Shown piece by piece: positions 834 to 43,426 of a stretch of DNA of 64,000 nt. Below the pieces are notes generated by a model. That model was given only the letters and a program-made list of their open reading frames with translations, searched no databases and was not told where the DNA came from. The stretch covers positions 27,900,001 through 27,964,000 of the forward strand of contig CM074516.1 in assembly GCA_037379345.1 (NCBI GenBank). Reading direction: 5' to 3'. The DNA is from Perna viridis (taxonomy: Eukaryota). How positions within the stretch are numbered: position 1 is the stretch's first letter; every line of letters begins with the position of its first letter. The position numbers and the translations under genes were made by a program.

Positions 834-3800
834 GTATTCATATTTTAGATACTGCACATACATGTATTTATTGTAGAAACAATTCTAGGCCTATCACATA
901 TTTTCATATGTCATCTCGAATTTGACAACTTTGTATTTGTGCATATGTGTTTGTTTTTTTTCTACAGAAACAAGAAATAGTTATTTATAGTGTATAAGAC
1001 TTCATTATGGGCTGAGACTGAATACATTCACTTTTCTATAAGCAAAAAAAGAAATGGCACAATAAAATAAAGGGTTAAAGGTTGGTAATCTTACCAACAT
1101 TTGTTTGAAAAGCCTGTAAAATATAAATTTGAAGATGAAAAAATCTGTGATGATTATTTCATTCAGATTCTTTATTTTACCCAGTAACAATACATTTTAC
1201 ATCAGGTTGTGATGTATCACTGACCATGATGATGGCATATTAGCTGTTGAATATAGGTCATCTCCATTCTTAAACATATAATTGGTGAGAAAAAGACTAA
1301 AATGCCAGTTTTCTCATGCAAGTTTAGAAATTTTAGGCACTCTTTGGTAAGATATAAAAGTTCTTTAACTTGGCTGAGTTATATATCTGAGATTTCCTAT
1401 CTTATTCTCGCACTTATGTCAGATTTTTTATTTCCCAAAACTCTCTTCCAGAATATACAAGCCAACATGGGTAGTACAGAAGTTTACAGACCATTACACA
1501 GTTTCTTCCTCCTCAAGCTAGAAGCTTCTCTGAGAAATGTATTCCTGGTGTCTGATGGCCACATCAACAATGAAGAGACAACTCTAAAATCTGTCCATGA
1601 AAATTGTCATCACACTAGAATATTTACATTTGGTGTCAGGTATAAGATTTCAGGCATTTTTTGCATCAATTTCATCTCAAACTTCTGGGTTCAACCAATT
1701 TTAAAAACAAGAGATTGTTAATATTACTTTAATCATGTTAAGTTTTGCTGTATTCTAGTTTTTTTGTTTTTTGCTGTGGACAGAAAAATGCAAAAAAATA
1801 GTACACACAAAATTAATTTTAACATTATATTATGCTAAGTATATTTTGAAACCAAGACAATTTATATTCGTGAATATGTGCACTTGGTGGTACAGTCGAC
1901 TCCACTTAAACGCATATCGCTTTATTGCATATTTGGGTTATTAGCATAATTTTCTCCTGCACAAATCCATTTCCTATTAGTCTATTAGGGAAAAAATTGC
2001 TGATTTGCATATGCCTTGCAGGTGTATTTCAGTTTATTGCATAGAGAATTTTGCCTCATCCAGGTAAAGGCAGGTTTTCCCAAATTCTATTTTAAGCCTT
2101 CGGGTCATAAATATGTCAATCATATTTATTGTTGTAAAAACTATATTATCATCAATCAGGAGGTGTAAATAATGGATTAAAAACATAATGGACATAAAAG
2201 ACAATTTAAATGATTTCTAATTACATTAAAATAAACAAGCACTTAGGTGAACAATGACTTTTGACGACATGCCAAACATCACCTTATGATGCGACTTGGG
2301 ATATTTTTTGTCCCTATTTAAATTCTTCCAACTACAAATGATTATCAGTGTAAATTTAATTTTCTTTAATGAGCTGAACAGTTTTTAGTGAGCTTGGGTT
2401 ACTAGGCATAAATATCAACCAAAAATTAAAAGTCATCATTCATTCAGTACAATGTCAAATGAAATTCAACTACCCTAAGGTGCCCCATACTATCCACACT
2501 TCATAGGAATATATCGAGGTCAATGACACGTATAATACACAACTATCAATGTACAATGGTGATGAACAGAGGAATAAAAACACACAGACCATTTCAAAAG
2601 CCTACAAACTGCAAACATTGATGAATATTACACTGAATCCAATATATATTATTATTTATTGATAAAATAACAATACAATGAGAAGGTCTATAACAATTAA
2701 ATACCAGATCAGAAATGTTGAACAGTGATATCCCTGGTTGATCCACAGTATCGTCGTCTTACCTGAACTCACACTTCCGGTAAATCATAATTTCGGTTAT
2801 AAGAATAGCCCAGTTATTTGCATAATTTTTACTGGCAAATAGGCTATGCAATTAAGTGGAATCCACTATATAAGAAAAAATAAGCTACCGTGAAAATTAA
2901 TATGTATACAGTATTTGTCTTTGTTTATCTCTCCACTCTTCCTTACTTCTACACTAAAAAGTTTACTGGAACCGTTTTAATTTTTTGTGGATATTTATTA
3001 TCACGATAAGGCTGGCCTTTCTAATTTTGCATCTAACGCTCTGTCGAAAGAGTATTCTGTTATAAAGAAACTTAGTCACTGTCATTTTTTTTCTTTTGAA
3101 AAAAAATTGAAAAACAAATCACTCACAAAGATAAGTTGCTTTACTGTATTTTTAGTCAGTAATAATTTGTGTCTTCTTGTCTTAGTTGAGGGTAAAGATT
3201 TTTCATGATTTTGTTTTCTCATTTCCAGTTCGACACATAATAAGCATGTGTTAAAGGCTGTATCTAGACTTGGAGCAGGATCTTATGAATATTTTGATTC
3301 TCATGCAAAATCTAAATGGGAAGGCAAGGTAATAAACATTTATTTTAGTTAAAGATGTTTTTTGTAACAAAAGTATCATTTGTTTGTGTTTTAAGGTTAC
3401 AGTTTGATTGAATGTTTCAAATCTCATTTGAAAATACATCCTTTTCTTCTAATTCTGAGGTTTGATGGGTAAGATAATAAGCCGATTAAATCAAGAATTA
3501 TGTACATGTATGACTTTCTTTTAATTTATAAGTTCCATGGTTAGTGAAAACAGTATATCACAATATATCAATTCAAGTTTCTGTAAAATTATTAGTTTTA
3601 TGTGGTGTACTAATTTTTGCTATTTTTGTGGTGGACAGAAAAGCTTGAAAAATAGTACCAGCAGAATTGAGTTTAAACACTGTAAAATGCTTATCATTTT
3701 TTTAAAACGCACAAATTGATACCCACTTGACAGAATCAGCAAAAATTAGTAACTGCAAAAATAATATGTTTACAGTATTAAATTTCAACAACATAACAAT

Positions 3801-6800
3801 GAGCCTGGTTAAGAATGTTATTGTTTTGAAATTAGATAAAGTAAGTTAAAATTCAGCGATATTGGAATTTCATGAGTTTTTCTATTATTCCTTTTTGAAT
3901 ACAAGGCCTAATCTATACATTGCCCTGTCGTTTGAGAGTTTCATCCTTGTTTATTGAAGACTAGTGGGTCGTTTGGGCTGACATTATTATCCCAGTTGAC
4001 ATATACACCATAACTGATTGTCCTACTTTTGACATCACGTTTTTTTTTGTTGAATCTGATTTTATAGAAATGCAACATTATCTAACAACCTATCACTTAC
4101 AAGTTTACTATCTCATTGTCAATGGTGTGATATGGCAAAGTATCTAGCTATCCTAAAATGACCAAATCATAAAGAAAGACTATGTAAAATTTTACAGGTG
4201 AAATCTCAGATCCATAAAGCTTCCCAGCCAGTTCTGACCTCTGTTTCTGTTGCTTGGCAACAGTATAGTGACCCGCCACCAATACAGGCACCTCAACAGA
4301 TAACAGCTTTGTTTAATGGCTCCCGACTAGTGGTATATGGATTTATCAATAATTGTAAAATGGTAGGTACTTTCAATAGGATAAATTAATGTGTAAAATA
4401 TTAATGAATTATCTCTGATTCTGAAGGACATAGTATGACTTTATACAATAAAGGATAGTGACAAAATTACCACACTGATAAACTTTAAGCAATAAGGATT
4501 ATAGAAGAAAGAGAAAGTCCATATAACAAATGGCAAGATCAAGGCAAAATCTGGAAAGTTTTTGTAACTCTATCCCCCTGACAAATATTTGGTTCAGTCG
4601 ATGATTTATCGTTACACAATTGTTTATGATTTTATATAGATATAAGGAAAAACTTTGTGGGATTAGATCATTGGAATGACGTCATAATGGGGCCATAATT
4701 TTATGTCATTTAGCAAAAACTGCTGAGAAATGTAAATTTTGTTGTTTTTTCGGACATATTTACATCTAGAATACTACAGTTGAACCTCAATGTGTCGAAC
4801 GCGGAAGAGTCGAAATCTGGGATAACTCCAATTAATTTTAAATTCCCAGCAAAACTCCCCTTACTTGATAGGACTTTGACGTGAATTAACCCTAATGTCT
4901 CAAAGTCAACTTACAAAGTTTGAAATCTGATTTCTTTATTACAACACATGATCGATGAGGGTTTTTACAACAATTGGCATGTCTTTTGAAATAATTTGTT
5001 ATCACTCTATATGGCTTGATTTGTGTATTTAATTAATCTAGTGAATCTGCAATTTTTTCGCAGTAATGTACAGCACATGGCTTGACATAACTGCTGATTG
5101 TGAGTCATACAAAGTTATGAACTTATGACATTTTTTATGTAGAAAAAATGAAAAGGAAATTTCCTTAAAACACTCAATGCCTATCAGTATTTATAACATG
5201 ATATACAACACACAAAAAATGTTTTTTTTTAATACAAAACATAAGACATCATAAAGTACAGTGTTAAGTGAAGTACATGTACAAACACAACAAATGATGT
5301 AAATGCAGAAACAATCATCAACCAAACTGTTTCCAGGTTATACTCGACCTCAGATGACTCGAATCTCAGATAATTCAAACATTTTTGCCTGGTCCCTTTG
5401 ACTTTGATTTAACACGGTTCCACTGTATGTCCACATGCAAGAAACAACTTTATGTTTTCGCATGTGATAAACTATAAAATATGAAATGTATTCACTAAAT
5501 ATTAATTTGTTTCTTGAATGTGGACACCATTTCCTTGCCAAAAATATGACCGGAAAGTGCAAAATTTGACAGAATATCAGAATCATGGTTAACTTAAAGC
5601 AATTTTTCTGTCCTTTCAATGAAAAATTTATCAGAAGTCTTTATTTTTTCTCACTTGTGATGGATTCAAGTCTCCAAATTCATAATTAAATTGTTTAGCA
5701 CTATATGATTAGTTTTCAGTCGTATTTTAGGCCAATAAGATCCCTTAATTGCCCCTTCTTCTTATTGTTTAATTTTGAATGTGATCTTGCCAAAGTACAG
5801 TAAATGTGTGTCCCTTGTTATGTCTTTTGTCAAAACTGTACTTTTTGCTTTTTATGCAACTACAAAAATATTTGTGATCATATTATTGTATAAAGCTGTG
5901 GTCATCATTGTCTGTAGACATTCCATGTCCTGACAATAACTTGAGAATAGATTTCTAAGCAATTGTACCATAAGGTACAACACCACAAGAAGAAGGCTGG
6001 GATTGGTTTTGGGGGTTGTGATTTGAACTGTTCATGAATTAAAGACACAAAAGGGACAGTAACAAACATTTTGTTGATGTCCAGAAAATGACTTTACTAT
6101 AAATGAACAGATGCCTTATTACTATAAATAAATTGGTATTAGTTGTAGGGTTTGTAAACTTGAATCATTTAGGCATGAAGGTCCAAAAAACGAACCCAAA
6201 CATTCTTTTTCATGATGTTTTGCCAATAAGTTGATTACAAGTGAATGAATCTTTTTTAAGTTAGATCTGGCAGGTGTATTAATATCTTTTGAACATTAGG
6301 TTTTTTCTAGTTAATTTGATTTCATGTGCATTTGCTAGGCCACACTGAAGGCAGAGATTGGAGGACAGGAAATATCTACTGTTGTATCAACATCTGAACT
6401 GAGTCAGACCAGAGGAAAGGTATACAACATAAGTCATTGTTCTGGTGCTAAAAAAGGGGGAGAGAAATCACAGTATAGTGTATGAAAAACAGGTTACGAG
6501 TATTGTCCGGGTTATTGAATAGACATAATATAAGTAACAGTATTATGACTAATAGTGTTATCATTTTGCTATGTCTTACATGTGGGATTTCCATTCTAGT
6601 ATATGCTTTAACAGAGGCAAATTTAACAGGAAGATGGGGAAATGGTGCACAGGAACAGGATTTTTAGCAGATTGTTGATAAAGTGAATTTTAATTTGCTC
6701 ATTTGAATGTTATAAAATTAATTGGATAATGAGAATGTAATCCAGGGACAAAGACCAGACATGGAAAACAGACATACACAATAAAGAACATAAAGTAACT

Positions 6801-9800
6801 AAAATCATACATACAAAGTAACAAAAGTAAATGAGCAACTCGGACTCCACTAAAAAACTGGGAGCATGGACCAGGTGCACTGGTAGGATAAGCGTCCTCT
6901 GCTTTTCTAGAAACACCTGCCGAGTTGCTCATAAAAAGTCAAGTCCAAGGTGGATGAAAGAGGAAAGGAAAACTATGACATGTTGAACAAATCAGATTTC
7001 ATGGTGCAGATGGATACACTGTAAATATCCACGAGTTCATGATGACGACCATAAAACTTCTGTAGTGGTGACTTCAATCTTGTAGCAACATAACCCTGTT
7101 CCAGAAGCCTATTTGTTAGAATACAAATGCGCGATACAAAAAGTCTGTGTAGTTTTGGCAAGCTCTGGCATAACGTATGAGTTGTGATATGAACACTCTA
7201 TATGCAGGTGCTAAAGGAATGTTGCCACGGATGAAAGGAAAGTTGACAATTCTGAATGAAAAGTCATCAAGCTTGCCGTAAAGTTTGGTCAATAGTTTTC
7301 CTTTACCATTGATTTCTGAGTGTAGGTCAAGATATGGGGGTGACTTCACAGTGTCTGTAGTATCCTTTATCTCAAGTTCTTTGGGATAGATGCGATGTAT
7401 CAAATCCCCAAAATTAGGATCGTTTAAAGATAATATGTCGTCTTTAAAGCGGAAAATGAGATTAAAGGATCTAGATAAAAGATAATATCTACATAACAGA
7501 ATGCTGAATATGTATTAGAAAAAATAACAATAGAAAAACACATAAAAACACATTGTTCATGGTATGCACTTTCAGTCATCTCAAGTATTCAGACAGTTAA
7601 TATTTATATGAATTGGATTTTGTTAATAATGAATTTTTGATGAAGATATTTTTAATTCCTGTTGTCACTGCCTAATGGATTTATTATGATTGGCAGTGAA
7701 AGTAATTTCGGTTATTTATTCTTACAGGTATTACACTGTATGACAGCAAAAGCTATAATCAGAGACTGGGAGGATGGAGTTCTCTCCACTGACAGCATAC
7801 ACCATCAGGTATATATATATTGCTAGAAGTTAGGGGAGAGGCTTGAACTATTGACTCTAAAAGACCTTTTCTTTAGAAAAAATGAAGAACCACTTTTTTG
7901 GGAGCAGGGCATAGTTAAAAGTGCCTGATTTAGGATTGTGACTAGTGTATAGTATTTCCAATTTGGGATTGATTTTCATAGAATTGAGGGACCAATTTTT
8001 GGGATATATTAACTTAATTTTTTCTAAACAATGCAAGTGTGGGCACATGATATTTTAGGCATACTCTCAAAGATTCTTTAATTTTACCTTTTGGCTACAT
8101 TAAGATGGGGGTAAAAGTCATGAAAGGTCTTCATCTTCATTCATTATCAGTCTATTAGTATAATGTATGTGAATGATAGAACCCTAAATGGTAGCAAAGG
8201 ATTATGCCAAGTTGTTCAGATTTGGTCATTTGACCCAGGAGAAATTATGTGATATTCATGTTTATTCAAGTCACTAGATTTACCCAAGCCAGGTCTGGTT
8301 ATGAAATTCAGGTCAAATCTGACACAAATCTACCATACCAGCTTTATTATCATTATAATGTGTCATTGGTGTTTATTTTGTTAGATGAAGAAAATGGACA
8401 TGAAAGATTACATTATTGAACTGAGCAAGAAATACTCCATTGTAACTCAACTGACCAGCTTTATTGCTGTAGAGAAAAGAGAAAAGGTACAAGTGGGCAA
8501 TAATTTCTATTTCAGATTGAAGATTTGTTAGAGTCTATATTTGTCTGTCATTCAATTATACCCATGCAAAGTTTCTGGAATCATCAGCCTTTGAATGATT
8601 TTAACCAGAATCTGCATGTTACACGTAGGTACATGTACATCATTAATTCCATGCCAATCAAAAATTCGATAGTTTTCAAGGTAAGAGGTCAGATTATATC
8701 CATGCGATACTTGTTTTTTTTTTATCTTCATAAAATGATAAACACTGGTTAAATTTCTCACTTTCTGTACTAAATATTTTGTTGATAGATTCTAGTAAAC
8801 AGATATAAATATTTCAGGATGAAGTATTTCCTACTGATGGACCTTCTATAAAACACCTGATTCATGATGAAGATGTTGATTCTCTGCCATACGTATCATG
8901 GCAAGAAGGTACAAAGTCACATATAGCCTCACCAAGTTAATTACTAGGTGCTTGATTCTTCGGCACTCCCATGTAGTTTGTAGAGCTTCATTACTGTTTG
9001 TTATTGCCATTTCAACAACAAATGAAATGAAAAAATACAAAGTATGTTCGTCATATTTTTTCTGTCTATGAATAATGCAAAAAAATGCCCTCAATAGTTT
9101 TTGGGGATGTTACTCAAGGCACATCGAGGGTGTCAAAAGGACACTCTAGAATTCTTCGTGTTTTATGTGTAAAGTTGAATGCCCTATAAAACAAATAATT
9201 ATTATTTCAATACACATAATCGTAGTGTATACTGTTCAAAGGGAAACAATCCAATTATTCAGAACAACACAAATATCAAGTATATATAATATAAACTTTC
9301 TTACATGAATACTTTCTAGATGGATATTTCATGTCCAATTATGAATAATAACTATATGCAAAATTATGAACTAGAATACTAAATTAAATAAATAGGAATC
9401 AAGGTAATATTGGAATTTATTATATAGACAGCAGTGATTTACTGAATTTTCCCCGTGTAAAAACTTGGATGATAAATAGGATAATCAATTGGTTATCATG
9501 AATAAATAAAATATGATCACTCGTGCCAAGAATGCATTAAGATTTAACTTTTCGCACACTCTTTAAATCTAGGTTTTCTTTGGAACTCGTGTGTGCAGAA
9601 CAATTTCCGCACACTTAATAAATCTAGGCATTCCTCGGTACTTGTGATCATATTTTTGTTAGTTATTCTTTCCAAAATTATTTAAGAAACTTTGATGCAT
9701 TGTTCATATCAATTGACGTAAGCTCCCTTCTGATTTGTATAAATGTCAAATTTTATGTTTTCATGTTATGAAGTTTTACTTTTTAAAAAACAGCAGAAAT

Positions 9801-12800
9801 GGCCAAGGAAATTTATTTGTTGAAATAGTGTTGAAAACGAATCATTTGTCATGATAGTGCCAAATTTTTTGTGCATTTTTTATTTACTTTTTTTTGGGGG
9901 GAGGGTATTTGACAGGGCTCATAGGTATTTCTAGCTGAGCATATAACTTCATTAAAAGCATTAGGACTAGTTAAAAGGGCAACGGGTGTATCATGCACTC
10001 AAAGTGCAGCTGTTTATTATAGAGACAACTGATGAAGGAGCACAGTATACTTCATCAGAAGATGAGGATGAAGATCAGATGTCATCTACTGATTACTCTG
10101 ATTATAACTCATCAGAATGGGAATGTGAAGAGGAAGAGGGCCAGAAAGGTTCTAAAAGAGTCAAAACAAAAACTTCAGATTTATCAAGTGATGATGAACA
10201 AAGGGAAGGTAAGATTGCCTTGACAACATAGGATATGTTATTAAATCCCTCCATTCCCTACCTGCTGCCTTTCCCACCATTTAGAGAAGGGTTTCACTTT
10301 AATTATTGCTTGCTCATTTGTTAGCCTCACTTCCACAAACAATGTATTCCCTTTTTTCTTTTTTAACAGTGCTCTATTTGTTTCCCAAGCTTTTCATCGA
10401 TGCTTAAGGAAGCATAGTTATTGATGTAAATGTTTGAAAGGTCCTTGTCAGGCCATTAATATCAGACATTTTGCCAAAATTTGCTTTGACCAACTTGCTT
10501 TGATTAATTTATTAAATTAAAAAATTTACATTTATCAATATTTAAAATTTTTCACAAAACATTTCAGCATAACAGTTATGTAGAATTGTACTATACACTC
10601 AATATTTTAATTTAGACTTTTTTCCATTTTGAAAAAAAATTGAATATAGACTTTTCTTAGAATTTAAGGAAGCATTCAATCTGTTTGCCAAAGATAGTGG
10701 TGGCATCCAATACAAAGATCTACATTCAGCCATGAGGTCAATGGGTCTCAATTCTACAGAATCAGAAATGGCAGATATTATGAAAGAAATGAATGTTTCA
10801 GGTAGTCATTAAACATATTTAAAAAAAAAAGTGTAATACACTGAAGGATTGTTTTCAATTGCTGGTTAGAACGTGGGATATAAACGACTTTGAGTCAGTT
10901 TACACTGAATAAATTGCAAAGCGTTTTATGTTACAGTGTAAATCGACCCAGAGTTATTTATATCTCATAACAAACAATTGAAAACAATTCTTAAATACCA
11001 GAAAACAAAAATAAAATCACAATATATATATGAAATCAACATTTTTTTTAACACACATCAATACTGTCAACTGTCAAGTGATTGCACCATTTGTTACTTA
11101 CATGCAAGCTTTTAGTGTATTGGGATACCCCATTGAAGTAGTTCCATAGTTAGGGGGCATGGCTAAAATACCAAGATAGGTTATACAAAATGGACAATGC
11201 TGCTTAATATCGTTAAACTATTCAGAATTTCACAAAAATAAAAATATATTGTAATAATTAAAATTTTGAAAGGATTTGGTAACTGAAGTGATGATTATCA
11301 GTGCTCATAATAGGGTTTGTAAGTCTTGTCATGTGACTTGTCCTAGTCTACCATTGACATGCATAGAGATTTGTCATTTTCAGAGTGTTGGGTTCAGTAT
11401 ATAAAAGCAAAACATATGTTTGCGTAAAAATACCAATGCAAATGACAAATATCTACTTCAACATGATAAAAGTGTAAAGAAAAGGGTAAAATAGAAGATA
11501 TTGCATTGTAAGACAGCGTTTCGAGAGCCTGGAATTAAACAATAAAATGCAGACCGGTCTTTGGATTTCAATACGTTCTACATCAGAAATTTTTTTAAAA
11601 AATGGAACTAGGACGAGACTTACAGACCCTTTACCCCTCATGAGTTACTACTGTAAGTTAGTGATTACTTGTGTCACCAACATTGATAACATATCTAGTA
11701 GCCATTCAACTCCTTCCCTCCTTATGGCCCGTCAAAATGTTCCCCTTCTTCTGTATAACATGGAATGCAAAGAACAGCATTAACAAATATCTAATAAATC
11801 TTACTGTACTCGGCAGGTAATGATGTTGTCAACTTCAACCAGTTTTTATCATTGGGGAAGAATAGAATGAAAGACACAGATGCTGAGGAAGACATTATTG
11901 AAGCTTTTGCTGTGTTTGATAAGGATGGGACAGGTCACATTAAACAAGAAGAATTACTTCATATCATGTCCAACCTAGGGGAGACAATCACTAAGGAAGA
12001 GACTGCTGAGATGATGCAAGATTTAGGAGGAGAAAGTGGGATGGTTAATTATAGGGCATTTTGTAGGTCAATGATGGAGAAGACAGATGTACCTAGAGAA
12101 GCTATTGGTCATGGTTCACATGGTTCGTCTATCATTACTTCTTTGTTTAAATATATGTTGTCTGGCAGGACTCTTCTAAAACTTATTAGAAGGTTGTATT
12201 TGAGTTATCTAAAATATCTATTGGCCAAGAAAAAGAAACATTACATTTTGAGTGACAGCTAGTGGTCATTTTTCAGGTCTAATCATACATGTACTTTTCA
12301 AACATTTGCTGTTACACTATTGATTCAATGTAAGAACAGGAATGCAATGGTGGACACATTTTTCATATTATAGCAAATGTGTAAATGCAGAAATAAATTT
12401 TATCTGAGAAATGATTTTGTTTTTAAAAACTGTTTATTAATACTGGTTTTGTAGAAATGCCAGTTTTTTCTGTTGGTATGTCCTGATTCCTTTCTCTTTA
12501 GGCAGTTTATTATACTCCTCTCATTATAGTCGGAGCTGGACTATATTGCAATAGCCCTGTCTGTCCATCTGTCTTTTAATTTTTCTGTCACATTTTTCTG
12601 TATGACTATGGTTGTTATGACTGGAACCAATTATTTATATGGGGCCAAAGAGGACCCATTTGATTCTGGTCAAATTCTTGTCCTTTGTCAAAAATATTGC
12701 AATCTTATTCAGAGCAGTATCAAGCTTGAATAGTGTGTCCATATTTGTCTAGCCGAAACTGTTCAGCTTTAACTTCAGTGATCATATCAGGCTGCAACCT

Positions 12801-15800
12801 GCAAAATATTTTATTCCCTTATTTGTGGGAGGTATATAGTGGTCATTGTATTTGTTTTCTCCATTCATCTTTCCGTTCAACTCTTTCATTTTCTTTTTCT
12901 CTGCAACTACTTTTCACGGACACTTTATATATTGACAGAAATCTTTACATAGGTATGACATATGATTGGAATTGATTTCAGACTGAAGCAACATCAACTT
13001 TCAGTTTCTATTTTGATCATATGGTTACTGGAGTAGGGGCATTCTTTATTTTTTATCTGCAAGATTTTTTTCCACATTTTACACCCAAAGCTTCCTAACT
13101 AATGTATAGATTATGTCTCCCCAACTTTGGTTGGGGGACATATTGTTTTTGTCCTGTATGTATATCTGTCTGTCTGTTTTTTTAACTTTTGTTAGCACAA
13201 CTCCTCAGAAACTACTACACAAAAATTTCATGAAATATAATTTTGTAAGTAAATGAAGTAAGGACATGGTATGTTGTTGAACACATTACCAATTATTTAT
13301 GATCCATTAATTATTTACCCTTTTGAACTTTGGAATGGGTGCAGACTTTTTTGTAGGAAAAATCAATCTTTGGTTTGACATTGTAGGAGAATTAATATCA
13401 ATAGAAAGTGAAACAATGTATGAGGCAGCATCTACAGAAAGTGAGAGTGAACCTGAAATGGACTTTGATTTATTTGACAGTAAGTGTAAGAGCATGAATG
13501 TTAATATAATGTAGCAATAGTACAGCACAAATTAAATCTCTGGCATTATTGGTACATGTGATCATGCTTTCTCATTATTATCCTATTTATGACAAATGTT
13601 AACGATCAAGAATTTCTTTGCTTTTTATTTTTTTTCCTACTTGTATAAGACACTATACTGAAATTGTACTTAAAAAAGGAAGGCTTTAGTTGATTTTTTT
13701 CCTTTATATTTTTATCAATTTCAGTGAAAAATGCTGTCAATTTGAAAGAAATTGACCTAAATGGGGAAATAGTAAAAATAAGATTTTTCAGGGAAGGTGA
13801 AAAAATTGGGTCGGAGGGAATGAGAATCTAGGATATTTTTTTTATTTAAGCCCAAACTGATAAATACTAATCAATTTAATTTACATTGTTGACAAGCCAA
13901 AGTTATTAAATGTTGAAATAAAAAATGCTGAAGCATCTACTGAAAGTGAAAGTGAAGTTGAAATGACAGGTTTATTTGACAGTAAGTATAAGGGGCATAA
14001 AAGTTAAAATAATACTGCAATGTTAGGTAAAACAAGTACAGCACAAGTTAAATCTCAGGCACTATTTGCATATTGTGATCTCATTTCTACCCTATTATAT
14101 CATACTAAAGCAGTTGCTATGTTAGGGTTTTGTTTAATCTTTTGCAATAATCCTCAGCAACCGTTCATTTGAGTGATTTATACAATGTTTTTATTCCTTT
14201 ACAGGTTTTCCCTATTGTAATTTTTTTGACTTTGTAGGACAACAACTTGTTTCCTGGGGTATTTTATTATTGTTCACCATAAAAATCTTATTAACCTCTC
14301 ACTGGAATGATTCAAAATTAGATGTGTGTCTCCTTGATTTGTTGTACCCTATTTAAACTATAGGCTCCGTCATTTGGTAAAAATTGATGATGTTGCTTTA
14401 AAGCATTTCCTAATTTTTTGTACAATATAGTGTCCAAAGCATTTGTTGTGTCCATAGTAAATTGTAAGTCCTTATGCTTAAGTGTGTCAAAAACTTGTAT
14501 TGTGTCTGAACTTGCCAAACTGTTCAGGGTATAACTACTGGGGTTTTACCATATTGTGCTAAACGAAACTTTTTATTGTATTTCTCAACCATCAAAACCT
14601 CAATGATTTGTGTTCGGTGCACTGTAGTTTTTGTGCAGTATTACATACAATTTAAACACTCCTGCACCATATGCCGATAATTGAAAGATTGATTTAACTT
14701 ACAGTGGATATGGGGACTTTTGACGAAACAGAATGTGCAAAGGCAACTAAAGAAAGTGAAAGTGAAAGTGATGAGGAAGTTGGTTTTGGTTTATTTGAAG
14801 GTAATTGTTAAATAATTGATTTGAGAGCATGAATGTTAAAATGGTGACTGACAATTTCTGTAGACCCAACACAGCACAAGTTCTATCTCACTTTTGTCAT
14901 TGGCGATCATTGTATGATTATCATTTTATCTTATTACATTTACTATAATACATTTTATAGAAGTTGACATTTTTATGACTGCAAAAAATTACTTTGTATT
15001 ATGTTATGATGTCCTTGTTGTTATCCTACAATAAACACTATTTCTAATTATGAAAAGAATCTGCCAAATACTTTTCATGTTATTGTGCTATGTTTGACTG
15101 CTGCCTATCAGACCACCCCTCTATTGTACAACCCAAAACTAGGAACAGATTTTTTTTTATGGAGATGTATAAGATAATAAATCTTGTTGAATGTTTAAAA
15201 TCAATGAACGGTAGACCCATCAAAACATCTAAATATAGTTATTCCATTATTTATATGCAGAAATTGTGAAATACCAACCACAATAATTTTTTTTCCTCAC
15301 TAAAAAGACAAGAAAATTCCTATCTTTAGCTATGCAAGATTTCCTTATCTCATCCGCGGGTTGATACAGAACCTGCTTTCCTGTAAAAATTGGCACTATC
15401 AAATAATGAGTTAGTGAATGATAAGATCTAAAGGAATGTTGGTAAGCACTCATAATATTAGAAAATCTTAATTATCTTGTTTGCCAGGCAGTGACTAGAA
15501 TATTGAAACAAAAACTCCAATTTGGAAATGAAGTTTGAACAGAGTTAAAAGTATTCACAAGGGTAATCAGTATGAAATTAACCTTTGACCTTAGAAGCAC
15601 TGAGAGCCTAATTTCAGTCGTACAGGAAATTAAGCAGTAATACTGAGTAAGGATTCCTTTATTCTCCCTTCCTAAACAGAATGTTTGCTTATCTTACGGT
15701 TTTTGTTATTAAATTAATCTGAGATAGCAATCAATTAACCACAAATATACATGTAATTAGAAAAAAGTTTTGATTTTGCAAAAAGTTGTAAAACAACTAA

Positions 15801-18800
15801 AGATAGGTAGCATATTTAAAATGTTAGTTTCTGAACCTGATCACTATTGTTGTCCATAAATGTTTGTAGTTAAAATAAATCCCTAAAACTGTCAGGTTTT
15901 CACACAGCTTACTTTCATCCGCACCATCTAGCACACTGATGTTTGTTTATTTTGGCTGTAAAAGTTTTTGCCTATGGTATAATTTTGGTGTGTTAATTTT
16001 GGCACTTTTCAGAGAGAAGCTAGATAAAACAATATAAAAGTACCACCAAAATATCCAAATTTACTGTATTTATTTCATCAATACTCAAACTTATTTGGTA
16101 GTAAAGCAAAACTAAGAAGTGTTAATAAAAAGGTGTTTGTCAAAGTGAGGAAGTCCTTGGACAAAAACATGTTCAGGAACAAATAATCTCACATGGTCAA
16201 ATAATTAAGAAAGACGAAAATTAAAAAACACACAGATAGGAGAAGTAGATCAGTAACATGTATATATTCTTGTAAATGCACTGCAAATGAATAACTCCAG
16301 TAGGAGATAGCTGTCAAGTAGTTTTAATTGTTTGTTTTTGGATTTTTGGAATAACCTAAAGCGTAGCTCAGTGATAGAAAGTGACTTAAGAGTACTTTGA
16401 AATAACAAATAAATATCAAATCTGCTTCATATAAATGTATACATATTTTGATTACTTCCTACAATTTATTCAGGAATTATTGTTTTTTGGAAAAATTTAC
16501 TTTGTGTCAAAAACTTCCACTTTGTAATTAACTGATTACTCTGTGTCAAAAACTTACACTGTGTAATTAACTGATCACTCTGTGTCAAAAACTTACACTG
16601 TGTAATTAACTGATTATTCTGTGTCAAAACTTACACTGCATAATTAACTGATTACTCTGTGTCAAAAACTTTCACTGTGTAATTAACTGAATCAACCACA
16701 TAGAGATATTGGGTCAAGCAGGATATGACTTCAATGAGTGTCTGTTTGATGGTATATGTATAAGGCTGGGTACTTTGGAGCATTTATTTTTTTTGGTGTA
16801 GGATCCATGTCTATTGTATATTTATTAAACTTGAAAGTATATTTATATTTTCAAACAATATCAGTATTTACAAATTCAGCTATTTTGATATCCTTTAACA
16901 GAAAACTAATTGACAGTGATATTTTACTAAATTGTTTTTTTTATGTTAGATTTTTTTTGTAGATGACAGCTATGATACATATGAGCCCCCAGTTGCAAAA
17001 GCTCTAAAGGCTACAGCTAACAGTGACAGTGAGAGCTTGAGTGAAGATGACTTAGCACTGCTTCATGGTAAGACTTTTTGACATTTTTTTATTATATGAT
17101 GGCAAAAATTATTTTTGGTTTTATAATTGAATCCCCTTGTCATTGTCGTTGGCTCCCATTTTTTAATCAGATTCCTCATTGAAGTTCTTGCCTGTGTGTT
17201 TGAATCAGATTACAGAATCTTTTACAGTTTGCAAATTATGTGGGGTCAAAAGGGGTCACACCTTTAAAAAATTGTCTTTATTTTATTTTTTGTGCAATGT
17301 TGAAAATTTTATTTCATTAGTTTCCTCATGGAAACCCTTGCCTGCATTTTTCTATCTGATATCTCTAACATTTTTTGAGTTATAAGGGGCCAAAGGGGAT
17401 CGTGTCCAAAAAGATTGACATTTTTAGGTTTGGTGCAAATTGAAAAACTTTTTTTATTGGATTCCATATGAAAATCCTAGTCTAAATACAAGAGCTTCAA
17501 GAAGTATGCTTACCAAATTTACCCTTTCATTCACTATTTTTGATATGATGAGGTACAAAGTGAACTACAGTGAATAAAGTGAATACACCTTAAGCAGACC
17601 TTTATACTTAAATTGAATTTCAAAATGCTACACAATATATTTTATCCATAATAAACTGTAAGTCCCTATGTTTTGTGTGTCAAAAACTAAGAGTTCAACT
17701 ATCTAGAGTCATATCATGCAGCACTCGGTGAAGTTTTTATTGAACCTTTAACACATTGTTCTTAGGAACATTGCCGAAGGACACACCCCAAAAAATAAAC
17801 TTTAAAAAAAAATTTTGTCTGCTTTCAATTTTTTTATTGGATTTCTTATGAAAATGCTTGAAATGCAATTAAGTCAGATTACAGATAGCTCTTACCATTT
17901 TCAAGTTTTAAAGGGTCAATTGGACCACACCCCAGAAAATGGATTTTTTAAATTTTTGGTCCTATTTTGAGAATGTTGAATTAAATTTTAAATTATGTGT
18001 CCTAACCTGTTATGTCCATGATGAATTGTAAGACACTATGCTTAAGTGTGTCAGAAACAAAAAAACTGAACTTGCCCCAACTGGACAGGGTTCGACCACT
18101 TTGGTCGTATCATGCTGTGCTCCACAAAGATCTTAATATATAATTAATATAACTTTTATGACCAAGCACATAATCTTAAGTTACTTCAATGTGAATCATT
18201 CCTGTTTTTAGACTAGATTGTGCATTGTTGTTGACAGTTGGATCCCCTGTTTTTGTTAATGTTAATATTTTGCATAATTGGCCAACAATTACCCATATAT
18301 AGCCAATTATAGTTGTAACCCCTCTGTTTCCTTCAGTCCTTTTTTAAAACCTATCTTCTATAGTACTTCTTTTTATTCTACTACTGGAACCATTGTCCAC
18401 CTAATGAGCAGTTTCCCCATATCTTTGCCTTTAATAACTTCATTCAAAGAGCTTTGTAAGAAAGAGTTACAGATACTTATAAATATAAGTGTCATATTTA
18501 TTTATACTTTGTTCTATTTAACTTCAAATAACAAAGAATATATTTATCTTGTTTTGATATGACTATTGTAGAGTTTGGAACTGCTCTGAAGCAAGTTCTA
18601 CTATAGCTCTTGGGTTGAATTAACTGTACTCTAGCCCTTGGTCTGAAATACCTATACTTTAGCCCTTGGGTTGAAATAACTATACTCTAGCCCTTGGTCT
18701 GAAATACCTAAACTTTAGCCCTTGGGTTGAAATAGCTATACTATAGCCCTTGGTTTGAAATAACCATATTGTAGCTCTGTGGTTGAAATAGCTATACTAT

Positions 18801-21800: not shown

Positions 21801-24800
21801 AAAGGGGGTTAGAAACATATGCATTTTCTTGATGTCCAGACAATAACTTGACTACTAGCAAATAAATCTCTTTGAAATTGTATTACAAGGTGTCATACCA
21901 CCAAAGGAAAACTGGGGTTGATTTCTGGGTTAAGACTTGAACCTTGTAGGAATAAAGGGCCTGAAACTAGCATTTTCCATATATCCATACAGTAACTTGA
22001 GTAAAAGTTAATGGATCTCATGTAAGTTTTGCTGCAAGGTGCCATACCACAATAAGAAGATTGAGATGGACTTCTTGGTTTGTGACCTGAGCTAAGTAAA
22101 ATTAAGGGGCTACAAAGAGGCCAAAAATAAGTATTTTTTTCTGATTTCTGGACAAAAACTTGAGTGAATGGAAATGGATCGCTTTGAAAATGTAGCATAA
22201 GCTGTCATATCTTAACAGGAAGTTGGTGATGGATTTGCAAGTTTTGACAAGAACTATATAGGAATATGGGTCAAAATGTGACCACTTCATTTTTGGTCAA
22301 ATTTTTATTCTTGTCAAATATCGAATCATAAATTCTAAATCTATCTAAATTCACAGCTGTATCAAGTTTTAATGGTGTAACCATATCAGGGTTTTATCGC
22401 TGACTGTATCACGCTGCAGCTTGCATAGATTTTTATAAAATAAGGGGCAAAAAAGGGACATTTTATTCTGGTCAAAAGAATATTTTGCCAGAGCTTTATC
22501 AAGCTTGAATGGTGTGTCCATATTTATCCCATCTGTTCAGGTTTGGAACTCTTGGGTCATATCCAGCTGTATCCTTCAATGAATTTCACTTACAGTGATT
22601 TTCCTACAACCATGACACTTTTTCGGTACCAATCTTCAGAATAGTACAAAGGATTGGACAAAACTATTGGGACATATTAACGACCAGTTGCTGTTGTAAG
22701 AGTTGATGAATAGGTAGCCACTCTCTTGTGAAAATTCACCTGAACAGGTGTAAACCAGCCAATAGCTTATGTCTCTCTTCATAAAGAATGTTCTCATCTT
22801 ATGAATACTTAAGTCAGATTGTGGTGGATTTTGTGCATTTTGAATTTGAAATTATTTTTTAGTTATTGCATATGAAACATATGCATGTTAGATATTTTCT
22901 TTGTATGTGTCTAACATATGTAACACACTTACATATATGTGGAAAGCTTATGGTTTTTAAATTTTAAAAATATTTTATGAAGAATAAAGCTTTAAACTTA
23001 AGGGTTCCCAAGTGGATTTCAAATTTGAAATCTATAAACTTGTTTCAGTAACATTTTCATGAAATGATAACTGATTAAGTTTATGCTACAATATATTTAA
23101 ATCGTCCTGTCTAAAATCTGAATCCATTGAGTACTGGCTCATTATTCAAAATAGATGCATCCTAGTACCAGTACATGTATTTGTTTAACTAATTCTAATG
23201 CATGTAAATTCTTGCACTATGGTTTCATTATCTTGTGTTTAGGTATTACAGTTGTGTGGTTATTATAACTTTGAAGAACCTTTTGTGCTTGAATAGATAT
23301 TCATTGCATAATGACATTATTTATATTTTAACCACTTTATTGTTTAGTCATGTCCTCTTTCTGTCTATATGTCATTCTAAGGTAGTCATTGCTATCTTAT
23401 ATCAACTTGCTGTTCAGCAAAACATATTATGTTTCAATACATGTAAAAATATACTGTAAACCAAGAAATTTTTGCGTGATATAAACTTTCACGGTTTTCA
23501 TTAGCCTGTAAAAATCGCAAAAGTTTATATACGCGAACAAATCGGGGAAATTTGATTGATCAGGTTGGGTGTCTTGTGTACAATTATACCATCGAATTTT
23601 CCAGTTGATCAAATACAGTTATCTTTCTTTGATTTTAATTTTTGTCTGAATACCTGAAAAAACATAAGATAGGTATATAAAATATTTATTTTTAATTCAC
23701 AATAAAATAATGTTTTGTAGCATATTTGAACTTTAAAACATCCAGTTTAAAATCACTAAAACACTGGGGTTTCAAACGTTTGTAGTACGTCAGCACAACT
23801 CTCATTTCAGCATCCCTGATCTGCGCCATCCAGTTTGAATAACGTTGGTTTCTTTCCTGATTTTTTCCCACGCATTTATAATCCATCTGGCATTCACGGG
23901 TTTAATGTTTGAAAGTTTAACGTCAACATCACACTCTTTAACAGATTTTCCGGCTTTCAGTTGTGATGAAATCTGTTTTGCATACCAGTAGGCAAACTGT
24001 GATTTTACTACCTCCTTGAATTGAGCATTGCCCTGTAGGTATAATGGTTGAAAGTTTGAATAAATCTTGTAAAAACTGTTCAAAAGATCAACACCTAATG
24101 TACCTAATTAACTTATACAAACAACTTGACCACTTAATCAATAAAAAGACTATATTGTTATCGAAATCTCTGACATTAGTATTAAACATCACCAGGGATT
24201 AAAAGGTAAAACAGAAATTTAAAATCCACTTAATTGTGAACAAAATATTGTTTATACAGCAATCTTTACTTTTATTTATTTTGATATAAGTTTTCATTAT
24301 TTTCATCAAAGGCTTGGGTTGTCTGATCAGGAAGGAATAGCATGAGTAAAATTTATATTTTTTTTCAAAAATTAAAATTTATTTGAAATATAAATTAGAC
24401 TAACCTTCTTGGTGCATAGTCCAGTTTCCACAAGGAATAATGCTGATGTTGGTTTGATCAAAATTGTTTATCATTTCATGTAGAATTTGACGTTCAGTGA
24501 CAACCGTGTGGGTGCTTGAGAGAAAATCAAGTTTCTGCTCTTCAAAGTCAAGGTGTAGTTTACGGGCTGCCTATGTGCCTTTCTGTCTGAAAAATCCAAT
24601 TCGTCTTAGGAACGATTCTGTTCAAGAATGTTAAAGACTAATGTGTCCTCTATTTTCACGTAACAGGTGTTTTGTTTTCTGTTGAATTATTCCGGTAGCA
24701 CATGCTATCACAATTTGTTCGCTGACAATAGCTCCCAAATTGTGAAGTTTATGAACATAGTCAACTACATCCTCGTCATACTTTCTAAGCAATAGCGGTC

Positions 24801-27800
24801 TTCCCGGTTCCGCTTTGGGAAGTTCTGACACTGTACTGTTGGGTGAATGTTCTAATTGTCTTAAATATTGTTTCTTCATAGAACAGATAGTAGTTTCACT
24901 GATTGGTTTGCCTAGTTCCTTAGAAAAATGTCTAACAGCACTAGGATTTCCATTCTCGCAAGCATATCAGGCTATTTTAGCTCTCTGACTACTGTCATAT
25001 GGAGAATATTCTCCTCTTTTCCTTTTATCACTGGAACGTATGGCAGATAAAACTGAAGAATTTGCAGCCTGTGTTGTTTTTGCACTTTCTGGTGCTTTTT
25101 CCAAATTTGTATCAGGCAACAAACTTCTTAAATTACTAGTACTGGTATTTCCATTCTGATTTTTTGTTTTTATCAACCACCTTGACAAAGACATCTTGCA
25201 ATTTGAAAAAATATAACACCCGAAATTGAGTTTGTGTTCACAAAATCATTCACCCATAAATATTGATGGGCAGTTGACAAGGCAGAGTCAATAATGTTAA
25301 CTATACAATAAATGGCGGATTCTCGTAATATAGGAAGTATATCCGTAGGAAGACATGACAAAATAAAGAAGGATAACTCATTTTTATTTGTATTTTATTT
25401 GACAAGATAGTCATAGATCCGCGAATATTAATTTTCAGTGATGTCATTATCGTGAAAATTAGTATCCATGAATCAATCCATTGACTAAAATTCACGCAAG
25501 TTTACTAACACAAATATTAGTTGGTTTACAGTAGTGCATTTTGATTTTTTTTTTTTTTTATGATTTGATATTAATCAAATCTTGGACTTGGTAAATGACA
25601 CTCCAATATAATTGTTTATATACCAAAATTTTTAATTAGCCAATTTCATACTCTTTTGTTTAACAGTTATTAAATGCATTTGTTTTATTCACAGAATTTG
25701 AGAAAGCTGAACTCAAAACAATGGAGCCAGTCCCTCAAATGGCATGTGTAAGCTCAGAGAATGTACCAACACTCCAAAGCAGTGTTCCTCAATCAGACTT
25801 GGAAATTAAAACCAAATATAGTCCCATTAGTAGAAAATGTACCTCTCAACCATTACCTCCACCACCAAAGACAGGTTTTCAACCTTTATCAAAAAAGACT
25901 CATGGTAATACTGGTCCTACTCAACCCTTGTCATCAAGAAAATGTCATGGTGGTCTTGTAGAGCTAGAACAGGTTACCCGTGGTGGACCAACATTTATTT
26001 CAGCTGCCCCACCTGCAAGTCCATTGTCATCACAGATTGCTCCAGAGCTCAAACCCTTTGCTGCTTCTCCTCCCATGTCACCACAGTTGGCTCGAACAAG
26101 CTCCTTTCTGGCTTTACCATCTCCAGCAATTATGGTATCAAAAGCCAGTCCTGAAAGAAATAGAGCTGTCAGGCTGTCTGTTGCAGAAAAGAACAAAAAG
26201 TCGGCTTGTATGGGAACACCAGATCTTGGATACCTATCTGGCATAGAACAGTCACCATATTTACAATTTGATCATTCTCCATCTGATTTACCTGCTTCAA
26301 CAAAACCTTCTACATTTGGAAAAAAGTTAAGTAAAAGTGCTGCTGAACCTCATATAGGGGTTGCAAAAGTTAGTAAGCCAGAGCCAAACATACCTACACA
26401 GCAGTCATTCGGTATGTCATTAACGCCATCATCATCACTCTCTGTGCCACAACAGCAGATGTCAAGGATTACACCAACCCACCCTCTGCCATTACAGACA
26501 GAAGACACTCCTCCTGGGGCACCACGCCCAAGACAAAGATCTAGGAGATTATCAGAGGAGTATGTTTATCTAATTAGGCCCCTCAACAAAAAGTTAAATA
26601 TGTGTTATTTTGCTTTGTTAATTTAATAAGAATGTCTAGAATGTTACGATTTTGATGAAAGGATTTTGATACCTGTTTACAGATATTATTTGCTGCGATA
26701 TAGTGGGAAACTCTTTTCATCTGACTATTTCTAAATCTTGTACAAAATATTTTGAGATTTTTCTGGCATTGTACAGGTATATGTATTTGCATGGCAAGAA
26801 AGGAAGAAAAAAAAATGTCGTTTTTTTTTTTTTTTAATTTTTTTTTTATTTTAAAGAAATATTTGACATTATGGTTTTCAGTATTTTTAATATATTCAAT
26901 TCTGTTACATATTTGACATTGCCGAACAAAGCTCACAAAATTTTCAATTTTCTGGTATCTCATTTTCTATGTCTACATTGGAATACTTTTAGGCAGTCGT
27001 TCTTTGCTGAGAAACTCAGATCCAGTGAAGCCCGAAGGTTATCCATTGATTTATCAGAGCAGTTATTAACTGAGAGGAGGAAGCAGTCGTCTAATTCAGA
27101 GGTATTGGCAGGTTATATTTGTTGTACTTACGTAGTACTCCGGCTATGAATCATGCAAAATGTGATTCATGGGTGAAAAACCTACATATTTTTATTTTTG
27201 ATATTTTGTTTGAAATGCCATAGTTAACATAAATTTACATTCAGTTCTTCATATAACCGGTGTTCTTAGGAAATAAAAATTATATAGAATGCACTGTAGA
27301 TTTCAAAATTGAGGGAGGTAACTCTGTAAATGACACTCAAATACAATAGTATCTATTGAAATTTCAATGTTGATTATCTCCTAAGAGCAAGCAGAATGAA
27401 TGAATAAGTACACACTTCATAGTATAGGCCATAAAACAACTTAATAACAAAAATAAAAATATGTAGCCTTTTTTTGGAGTGTATCACATTTTTTCAGATT
27501 TTGCATGATTCTTACAAAGACTGCTACTTAAAAGTTTCATTGTGACTTTTAACGCAAGTTAATCAAATGAAACATCATAAACTAGCCGTAAAGAAATTGT
27601 AATGATGTTGAAATGAAATAAACTTCTTCCTCTAGGATTACATTCAAATATTTGACCATTTGACAATTTTGATTCATAGACAATGCAACATAATCACACA
27701 ACCAATTGCAATGGTTAATTTTTGACTTCCTTTGTTTATATCACATTTGTGATGTGATATTCTCTTAGTGAATTAGTACTAGTTTAAAATCAGGTGAGAA

Positions 27801-41542: not shown

Positions 41543-42601
41543 TACTTACTTACTTACTGCCCTTTACGCCACTGGCATGTAGGGCAGCAACGAAGTTCCT
41601 CCACTCTTGTATATCATTGGCAAGTTTCTGTAATGTGCCCCAAGTCTTCTTATGCTCTTTGACTTCTGCTTCAATGGTGATCTTTGGGCGTCCTCTCCTG
41701 CGTTTTCCCTCAGGTGTCCAGAATAGGGCTGTTTTTTGTGTTGTCTTTTGGGTCTTTTCGCAGGACATGTCCTAACCACTTCCATCTTCGTTTCATAATG
41801 ATGGTGGCCATGTCTTCTTGTTGGCATCTATTAAGGAGGTCCTGATTACTGATCTTAAGAGGCCAACATATTTTTAGGATCCTCCTCAGACTCCTGGTGT
41901 GAAAGGTTGAGAGTTTGTGTTGGTCTAACTCTGTTATCCTCCAGCACTCTGACCCATAAAGCAGGATAGGAAAGACGCAACTGTTATACAATTTTAGTTT
42001 GGTGCGGATAGTGTATTGTCCTGATCTCCAGACAGGTTACAAGCTATTAAATGCTCCTCTTGCTTTTGAGAGTCTAAGGTGGATGTCGCTCTCCGCACCT
42101 CCATCAGTTGTAACTATACTACCGAGGTATGTGAATTTGTTGGTAAAAGGTAGACATTGTTCATGCAGTTTGATAGGTGTTGGTGTGTTTACATTCAACA
42201 TCATAACCTCGGTTTTCTTTTTGTTGATGTTTAGCCCAATTTGTCCTGCAAAATTCTGAAGTTTCTTGGTCTTTTCTTGTATGTGTTGGTGGGTGTGAGA
42301 AATCAAAGCTATGTCATCGGCAAAGTCTAGATCTTCCAAGATGGAGAAGGCATTCCATCTGATGCCTCTTGGTGTATCTTTCGTTGTTTGTCGCATCACC
42401 CAATCAATGGCTATGATGAAAAGTATAGATGACATAACACAGCCTTGACGGACTCCAGTTTTTACATTGAAATACGTGTCGCTGTTGTTTCCGACTCTGC
42501 ATCTGAAGTTCGTGTAGAAACTTTTGATGACGTCCATAAGTTGTTGTGGTATTCTGTATGATCTAATTATTTTCCATAAACTTTCTCTATGTATGCTATC
42601 A
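41543..42601 (-). mobile_element. 5'-truncated RTE-clade LINE (RT C-terminal part), frameshifted
   Basis: ORF 42037..42615 (FDSIHRESLW, GVRQGCVMS, DLDFADDIAL, FTYLGS), continued in 41710..41991 and 41550..41768; (TAAG)n tail; AAGGTAG direct repeats at 41536-41542 and 42602-42608. Confidence 0.92.
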
Positions 42602-43426
42602 AAGGTAGGATACAAGTATAATATATAAAAGTTTTTTGGTTTTTTTTTCAGTTTGATGTTTGTCTCTAATTTAAGTCATATGGGATTATAACTATTTCTA
42701 TCATTCACTGAAAAAAATCATGTATCATATTTCTTTAAAATAAAACTAAAAAAGATAAAACGAAAATTATCTAAGCCCACGAAAATATAACTGCCCCCCT
42801 AAGAAACCATATTGTCACGATATAAACAAACTCGTCGAACGGGAATTTAGCTTCAATCCTCATTCGAAACCCAAAAATTTATGCCTCTATATCTAGCCTT
42901 TATAAAAATATCAGGTATCCGTAATAATTTTAGAAAAATACACTTACAACGAAAAGTTCTGAAAGGACGAACGGATACTGTTAATACCATACATATCCCG
43001 CAAAGTGGGACATAAATAGATAGTTTCCATTTTCACAGAACATATTTCTATCGAGCAGCATATCATTAGATATTAAATAGGCCTTCAAATAGTCTTTGTA
43101 TTGTAATGTTATATGTTCCCGACAACAAAGTCTGATTTTGACATTATTTTCTATGTTTTATTTTTTTAAATTTTTTATTGTTGCCTTTTTTGATATGAAA
43201 CAAATGAAAGGAAGTACCTAAAATTAAACTCATGTAGAATTGTATAAAAATGTGCAAAACAATTCTCGCGCATAAAGTACATATATCTGTACCTGCAAAT
43301 TCGTCTTCACACTTACGCTTTTATACAAGCAGATCTGAATAAACCATGAATATTCAAGTACAAAATATAATTCCCAGGAAGTGAGTATTTCCATTCACCA
43401 TCTAAAGTGTATTTTATATGAGCAAC

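Follow-up and report, generated by a model that had tools for sequence, protein, structure and literature searches.

Fusions of an enzyme with a calmodulin (CaM)-like domain are known from the calpains and from the calcium-dependent protein kinases (CDPKs) of plants and protists, in which the enzyme is joined in frame to a CaM-derived domain of four EF-hands. The gene fusion behind the CDPKs has also been argued from intron positions common to CaM; their CaM-like domain is C-terminal, with Ca2+-binding EF-hands that work on an autoinhibitory junction. Ca2+-insensitive clamps of the EF-hand superfamily are represented by EF3-4 of muscle alpha-actinin and by the myosin essential light chains. 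Vertebrate PARP4 (the vault PARP) has the domain order BRCT, PARP, VIT and VWA, followed by a variable region with a long, disordered and fast-evolving exon, and by a C-terminal MVP-binding region. We know of no EF-hand or CaM-like domain described in PARP4, and full-text literature searches in which PARP4 was paired with EF-hand, calmodulin or molluscs turned up no relevant report. Here, a DNA stretch of 64,000 nt from Perna viridis (contig CM074516.1, G000:C6:27900001-27964000, free of N; hereafter the window, whose numbering is used unless another contig or locus is named) was analyzed, and a CaM-derived module was found to have been captured by a PARP4 gene and to be spliced into its mRNA.

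The gene agrees with human and other vertebrate PARP4 in its domain order and in having a variable region after VWA, and it differs by the CaM-like domain, for which the literature searches gave no counterpart in PARP4. Like the CDPKs, it joins an enzyme in frame to a CaM-derived domain of four EF-hands. Unlike theirs, the module is internal and belongs to another enzyme class; three of its sites are dead, and a junction motif was looked for and not seen. With its different enzyme, its internally placed domain and sites that are for the most part dead, it would be a new form within a known kind of fusion. With alpha-actinin EF3-4 and the essential light chains the module shares the EF-hand pair, the lost Ca2+ ligands and hydrophobic pockets of the kind that grip a helix, and it has no sequence relationship to them beyond the EF-hand superfamily.

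The host had been named as PARP4 in an earlier sequence-only reading of the window, and the domains upstream of the module agree with this. Pfam matches were found 6-28 kb upstream, on the + strand, in the order BRCT_2 (1e-6), PARP catalytic (2e-5 and 5e-8), VIT (5e-26) and VWA_3 (2e-7), and this order on one strand identifies the PARP4 architecture. The motifs FHAS, GIYFA and DDEYVVY, which may represent the H-Y-E catalytic residues, were also spotted by eye in the upstream open frames. The exons that follow VWA (3209-3331, 4282-4365, 6330-6422, 7722-7811, 8385-8489 and 8836-8904) are colinear with a diverged PARP4 paralogue on contig C9. A very similar tandem copy, situated about 160 kb upstream, shows the same order of exons as far as 7731-7811, the end of the stretch compared.

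RNA evidence was taken from Logan contigs of four runs, each from a different study, over positions 9900-14900. GT..AG joints 10208>10661, 10801>11817, 12122>13387 and 13479>14705 were observed in all four runs; the first three are the junctions that the sequence-only reading had put forward. The joints connect an acidic exon, the two CaM-like exons (termed exon A and exon B) and two further exons (Table 1). A contig of 2476 nt, present in two runs, carries all five of them; it extends 377 nt upstream, into 8818-8908, and for another 1275 nt in the downstream direction, where it enters 16963-17067. Before 10021 the RNA contigs have a loose end that maps to 8877-8906, and the exon 8818-8908 is conserved in the C9 paralogue, where tblastx matched 8836-8904 (weakly in another search). 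No joint skipping the CaM-like exons was reported in the four runs.

The coordinates, the frame and the phase-1 introns given for the CaM-like domain in the sequence-only reading were found in the sequence as described. Exon A opens after AG with AA, which finishes the Glu codon begun by G10208 and is followed by FKEAF; it contains the degenerate EF1 loop (10687-10719) and ends G/GT. Exon B opens after AG with GT, finishing a Gly codon, and comprises the remainder of EF2 (to 11842), the EF3 loop (11918-11953) and a degenerate EF4 loop (12020-12055). Its CaM-homologous part stops at 12082; another 13 residues lead from there to the phase-1 donor, again G/GT. There is no stop codon at the CaM end, as had been noted; the frame runs to the donor, and the stop lies past it, at 12260-12262.

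Table 1. Exons and introns in and around the calmodulin-like module of the PARP4 gene (positions in the window).
Feature	Position	Strand	Character or support
PARP4 exon just 5' of the inserted block	8818-8908	+	starts in phase 0, ends in phase 1
Acidic exon, 186 nt, phase 1-1	10023-10208	+	RNA contig piece 10021-10206 joined to 10659
Exon A, 141 nt, homologue of the 144-nt CaM exon 3	10661-10801	+	EF1 helix-loop-helix and start of EF2
Intron, phase 1, at the CaM DAD-G/NG position	10802-11816	+	skipped by a GT..AG joint in 4 runs
Exon B, 306 nt, CaM exons 4 and 5 fused	11817-12122	+	joint 12122>13387 in 4 runs
Intron, phase 1, 3' of the module	12123-13386	+	partly retained in RNA contigs
Next exon, 93 nt, phase 1-1	13387-13479	+	RNA joints to exon B and 14705
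Following exon, 96 nt, phase 1-1	14705-14800	+	RNA contigs
Following exon, 105 nt, phase 1-1, acidic	16963-17067	+	loose end after 14800 maps to 16963-16992

The whole genome was searched with exon A and exon B separately, and about 30 CaM or CaM-like genes were found, mostly clustered on contig C2. The comparisons with this donor family, based on 20 exon-A and 29 exon-B homologues, were made exon by exon. All 20 exon-A homologues are exactly 144 nt long and have the same phase-1 boundaries (E/FKEAF and DAD-G), and all 29 exon-B homologues begin at the same phase-1 point as exon B; the two introns of the module thus lie at conserved CaM positions, as the sequence-only reading had stated. The shorter length of exon A (141 nt) had been attributed to a codon loss in the EF1 loop, and the alignment places the lost codon there. 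In the family, a 31-nt exon (ADQLTEEQIA plus G) lies upstream, and a further phase-1 donor follows NYE in 29 of the 29 exon-B homologues, leading to a mini-exon of the type FVTMMTSK-stop. The canonical CaM of this genome is represented by exons at G000:C2:51695686-51695820 and 51697245-51697487 and a terminal mini-exon. The family layout of five exons and four introns is the one published for abalone CaM genes, and it is reported to be shared by a sea squirt, one extra intron being present only in human genes (PMC6171432).

As an observation on the family itself, contig C2 carries a tandem CaM expansion of at least 29 genes, at about 41.05-41.66, 47.23-47.28, 54.63-54.69 and 22.37-22.83 Mb (loci L010-L059). 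The CaM-family genes on C2 are all of one intron layout, and several copies are identical or near-identical to canonical CaM in the exons examined.

The family intron at NYE-E/F is missing in exon B, where the lost site corresponds to codon 12056-12058; the module has thus kept two of the three internal CaM introns. Counted over the four introns of the CaM gene, it has the second and third at exactly the same places and lacks the fourth. The claim that it retains CaM's own introns stands for the first two and fails for the third, which all 29 paralogues possess. Loss of the 3'-most intron alone is the usual pattern of reverse-transcriptase-mediated intron loss. Because two introns are found at positions and in phases identical to those of CaM, in agreement with the genome's own CaM family and with the abalone and sea squirt layout, the module was captured at the DNA level, as had been proposed. 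A processed retrocopy was rejected on the same two parental introns. The exons from 10023 to 17067 (186, 141, 306, 93, 96 and 105 nt) all have lengths divisible by 3 and phase-1 introns on both sides, the pattern that is left when modules are shuffled into an intron of phase 1. With a donor family of about 30 genes of identical intron layout in the same genome, this is an unusually clean case of exon shuffling.

The module is colinear with CaM over its whole length, from about residue 2 to residue 148. Identity to the genome's canonical CaM amounts to 65 of 127 aligned positions (51%), or 50-54% per exon against the canonical CaM group, and the divergent CaM-like paralogues are more distant. 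Exon A is 50-52% identical to the canonical exon at the protein level and matches it at 93 of 144 nucleotides, which indicates that the capture was not recent or that fast evolution followed it. Against the PDB, exon B aligned with CaM residues 61-149 (E about 1e-29), and the best matches were all CaM. Among the elements conserved with CaM are the central linker MKDTD and the EF3 region; the linker and the entering helix of EF3 form the best-conserved part.

The acidic exon may hold a remnant of CaM exon 2. Its last ~11 codons resemble that exon (ADQLTEEQIA), with the same phase-1 donor, when compared with 11 CaM exon-2 sequences, and the end was likened to exon 2 of the paralogue L053, which reads SDLSEEQIA. 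The stretch is short and the likeness suggestive only; if it holds, the capture would have taken in practically all of the CaM coding region apart from the start and stop codons. No second genome copy of the acidic exon was found at the thresholds used.

Inspection of the Ca2+ loops agreed with the sequence-only reading that EF1, EF2 and EF4 have lost key acidic ligands. Of the 11 ligand sites at positions 1, 3, 5 and 12 of these three loops, only 3 survive. Among the changes, Asp1 of EF1 is replaced by Ala; in EF2, Glu12 by Gln and Gly6 by Asp; in EF4, Asp3 by Gly, with Arg/Ala at the expected Glu12 and a net change of one residue in length. EF3 had been called canonical and proved only near-canonical: it keeps Asp1, Asp3, Thr5, Gly6, Ile8 and Glu12, but position 9 is occupied by Lys, a residue found there in none of the 29 paralogues. 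None of the four loops passed the PROSITE pattern PS00018, which canonical CaM EF1 matches. The loop sequences are consistent with the earlier estimate that the domain would bind at most one Ca2+. Compared with canonical CaM, the PARP4 module is similar in its colinearity, its two phase-1 introns, its Met-rich character and its linker and EF3 region; apart from the sequence divergence, the shorter EF1, the EF4 length, the missing last intron and the failing loops, it differs in having neither start nor stop and in being embedded in a large enzyme.

The hydrophobic surface, which had been claimed to persist, has fared better than the loops. Hydrophobic character is kept at 33 of 36 positions (at the other three, Met72 has become Gly, Phe99 His and Val121 Thr), the 134 residues of the module include 12 Met compared with 9 in CaM, and all length changes are whole codons and in frame. 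Fisher tests of identity at hydrophobic versus other positions (p = 0.43, not significant) and of ligand versus hydrophobic positions (p = 0.09) were also made; among these sequence-based measures of retention, only the 33 of 36 appears striking.

Pfam searches with exon B gave EF-hand_7 (PF13499) at 36.0 bits, EF-hand_6 at 33.9 and EF-hand_1 at 30.6 (cut-offs applied: 30 bits for EF-hand_7 and 25.4 bits for EF-hand_1). The AlphaFold2 model of exon B, for which 15 paralogue exon-B sequences served as the alignment, showed an EF-hand helix-loop-helix pair over residues 20-89, with a predicted local distance difference test score of 75-84, helices at 20-33, 43-52, 59-68 and 78-89 and short strands; confidence was low for residues 1-18 and for the C-terminal extension of 13 residues. 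Foldseek with this model returned only CaM. The top match was Ca2+-free CaM, and the lowest root-mean-square deviation (2.6 Å over 71 columns) was obtained with EF4-mutant CaM C-lobes bound to Kv7.1. Judged by sequence and model, the module still looks like a folded two-lobe EF-hand unit with the Met-rich hydrophobic pockets of CaM.

The course of events can be summarized as follows. A CaM gene, apparently from about residue 2 to the last residue and without start and stop, was captured as DNA into a phase-1 intron of one PARP4 copy; the captured exons have kept two of the CaM phase-1 introns and lost the 3'-most, and they are spliced into the PARP4 mRNA. By exon order they fall after the VWA domain and ahead of the C-terminal part. 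There the domain may grip a helix that belongs to PARP4 itself or to some other protein recruited to the PARP or the vault. With EF1, EF2 and EF4 dead, and EF3 imperfect and paired with a dead partner, a sensitive Ca2+ switch is unlikely. We regard the module, with moderate confidence, as a largely Ca2+-independent clamp of the apo-CaM or light-chain type in the variable linker of PARP4.

Several observations weigh against such a clamp. Upkeep of the host frame forces part of the maintenance of the open reading frame, independently of any function of the domain itself. Exon A alone fell below the Pfam cut-offs (17.5 bits for PF13499), and the AlphaFold2 model covers exon B alone, and with it the C-lobe. 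A scan of the gene region for IQ-type motifs, with a non-exhaustive look at basic amphipathic classes, gave no in-frame match, and no partner is known. Both differences seen in exon B in the RNA of one individual are non-synonymous (11993, K>E; 12071, M>V). No single contig spans the PARP catalytic exons and the CaM-like exons; that they share one mRNA is suggested by their order and strand and by the colinearity with the C9 paralogue.

The remaining two points against the clamp concern the distribution of the module. The acidic and CaM-like exons are absent from both other PARP4-like loci, G000:C6:27731181-27742766 and G000:C9:495436-511430 (L067, L074, L068, L069, L075, L078), which were compared through the short loci returned by the searches, and elsewhere in the genome the CaM-like exons have matches in CaM-family genes alone, so that the block belongs to this one PARP4 copy. 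In the C9 paralogue nothing similar follows the homologue of 8818-8908 within the available 1.5 kb. The tandem copy, 81-98% identical in amino acids in VIT and the post-VWA exons, gave no match even to exon 8818-8908; stops inside its VIT match indicate that it may be partial or a pseudogene. In the protein libraries, a HMMER search with exon B covering 1.84 billion representatives gave only P0003, a fragment of this very sequence, at high identity among the best 150 matches by summed score, so that a moderately similar PARP4 orthologue could be hidden; the long matches P0001, P0011, P0017, P0019, P0057, P0071 and P0142 are multi-EF-hand proteins without PARP, VIT or VWA. A word search with exon B, among proteins of 56-177 residues, likewise found only P0003. 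Given the ranking and the length limits, these blanks are not proof of absence; the libraries, in which no module-bearing orthologue was found, thus gave no evidence of long-term conservation.

The same distribution suits the view that the module is a tolerated passenger, a lineage-specific exon-shuffling insert in a variable, largely disordered linker. Such an insert would have no function of its own, and its frame would stay open for the sole reason that a frameshift in it would ruin the remainder of PARP4. Besides its presence at one of the three PARP4-like loci and the lack of an orthologue among the proteins searched, the three degenerate loops and the two non-synonymous polymorphisms fit such a passenger, and the equivalent linker of vertebrate PARP4 is fast-evolving and disordered (PMC4038475). 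A neutral sequence, however, would not retain hydrophobic character at 33 of 36 positions and a confident EF-hand pair model after ~49% divergence, with every insertion or deletion a whole codon and no exon-skipping joint in four studies. We consider the passenger unlikely.

Less likely still is a Ca2+ switch, in which the single EF3 site would sense Ca2+ and toggle PARP4 activity or vault docking in the manner of the CDPK CaM-like domain. EF3 does retain the six loop residues named above and scores above the Pfam EF-hand_1 and EF-hand_6 cut-offs, and the central linker and the EF3 entering helix are better conserved than the rest of the module. On the other side stand the Lys at position 9, unseen in the paralogues, an N-lobe with no competent site, and the EF4 partner, whose missing position-3 and position-12 ligands would, from what is known of CaM biochemistry, make cooperative high-affinity binding unlikely. 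Nor did the scan of the gene region reveal a junction of the autoinhibitory or IQ type.

The exons directly downstream of the module bear on a further idea. The exon 13387-13479 ends in a motif like the C-terminal tail of the ribosomal P0/P1/P2 proteins (...EMDFDLFD), and 14705-14800 ends in a second P-stalk-tail-like motif (...EEVGFGLFE); both are spliced into the mRNA. Two related observations were made: a third P-stalk-tail-like copy lies at about 13918-13982 (...EVEMTGLFD, then GTAAGT) and is skipped in the contigs shown, and the acidic exon 16963-17067 has a weaker likeness to such tails. CaM and the ribosomal P-stalk tail are both cofactors of the host on which toxins and effectors of pathogens seize. 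The PARP4 linker, loaded by exon shuffling into one phase-1 intron, could serve as an integrated bait, displaying a Ca2+-blind CaM and P-stalk tails so that pathogen effectors are captured or ADP-ribosylated at the vault. The tail-like exons and the CaM-like module share one mRNA, the PDB neighbours of the exon-B model include CaM bound to anthrax EF, Shigella OspC3 and the Vibrio MARTX NADase domain, a bait might well lose its Ca2+ sites and retain its binding pockets, and the linker of vertebrate PARP4 is under positive selection and has been proposed to bind pathogen factors (PMC4038475). This case is purely circumstantial, and many CaM-dependent toxins require Ca2+-loaded or native lobes, so that we hold the bait to be improbable. 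If true, the arrangement would be an animal counterpart to the integrated decoys found in immune receptors of plants.

Some of the RNA reads through the donor of exon B. Contigs crossing 12122 were found in X1 (12094-13415, the whole intron), X2 (12094-12550) and X6 (12119-12288), with read-through versus spliced contig depths of 14 versus 51, 6 versus 36 and 3 versus 19, respectively, although per-contig depths of Logan are unsuited to ranking parts of a gene. Intron 12123-13386 is covered by RNA in three of the four runs, and the introns flanking exon A are uncovered except for a dispersed repeat. As shown by these lower-depth contigs, a fraction of the transcripts retains the intron and would end at 12262; a truncated, intron-retaining form coexists with the spliced form. 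Read-through would add a 46-residue basic tail rich in Leu, Lys and Tyr before the stop at 12260-12262. The library protein P0003 (131 residues) is this read-through frame ending at 12262, with an internal Met as its start, and it derives from unspliced colinear genomic contigs.

The sequence-only reading had named an independent transcript with its own start and a stop at 12262 as the finding that would overturn the fusion, and such a nested CaM-like gene in a PARP4 intron, to which the contigs crossing the donor and the P0003 frame might point, is hardly credible and was rejected as the main product, since in four studies the main contigs join the CaM-like exons to PARP4 exons both upstream and downstream (the 2476-nt contig holding both CaM-like exons as part of a longer mRNA), the stretch from the stop at 10630-10632 to EFKEAF contains no in-frame ATG, and P0003 is of genomic origin.

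Other features were noted in and around the gene. The intron 10802-11816 contains, at about 11310-11630, the dispersed repeat of ~320 nt mentioned above, which has at least 40 copies, 80-87% identical, on many contigs; the RNA contigs over it are loose at both ends and thus derive from other loci. In the same intron, 10844-10992 matches its own reverse complement (72% over 149 nt) and is palindromic or hairpin-forming. The PARP4 intron between the VIT and VWA exons carries a tandem array with a 53-nt period and an overlapping ladder of 45-codon open frames (L063:7708-8261, G000:C6:27897708-27898261). The variable region after VWA also includes a Pro-rich open frame of 320 codons (25664-26623), which had no Pfam match. 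Open frames on the + strand with B-box-like Cys/His patterns (44674-46254, 49382-50926, 55639-55851, 62476-62652 and 63022-63324; CKQCKECICLQCIEELHEDHTFC) look like a tandem gene family of the TRIM/B-box type downstream of PARP4. Frames on the - strand at 41553-42675 (reverse transcriptase-like at 42040-42675) and 24634-25245 (another mobile-element protein) are probably transposon remnants between PARP4 and the B-box genes.

The function of the vault and of PARP4 is a long-standing open question. If the module should turn out to be confined to this lineage and to have no partner, it would be a curiosity of gene evolution and not a clue to vault function. The fastest-evolving part of vertebrate PARP4 is a featureless disordered exon, whereas here the same part carries recognizable modules that can be tested. 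The CaM-derived domain, in particular, offers a concrete handle on partner binding with and without Ca2+ and on the recruitment of PARP substrates.

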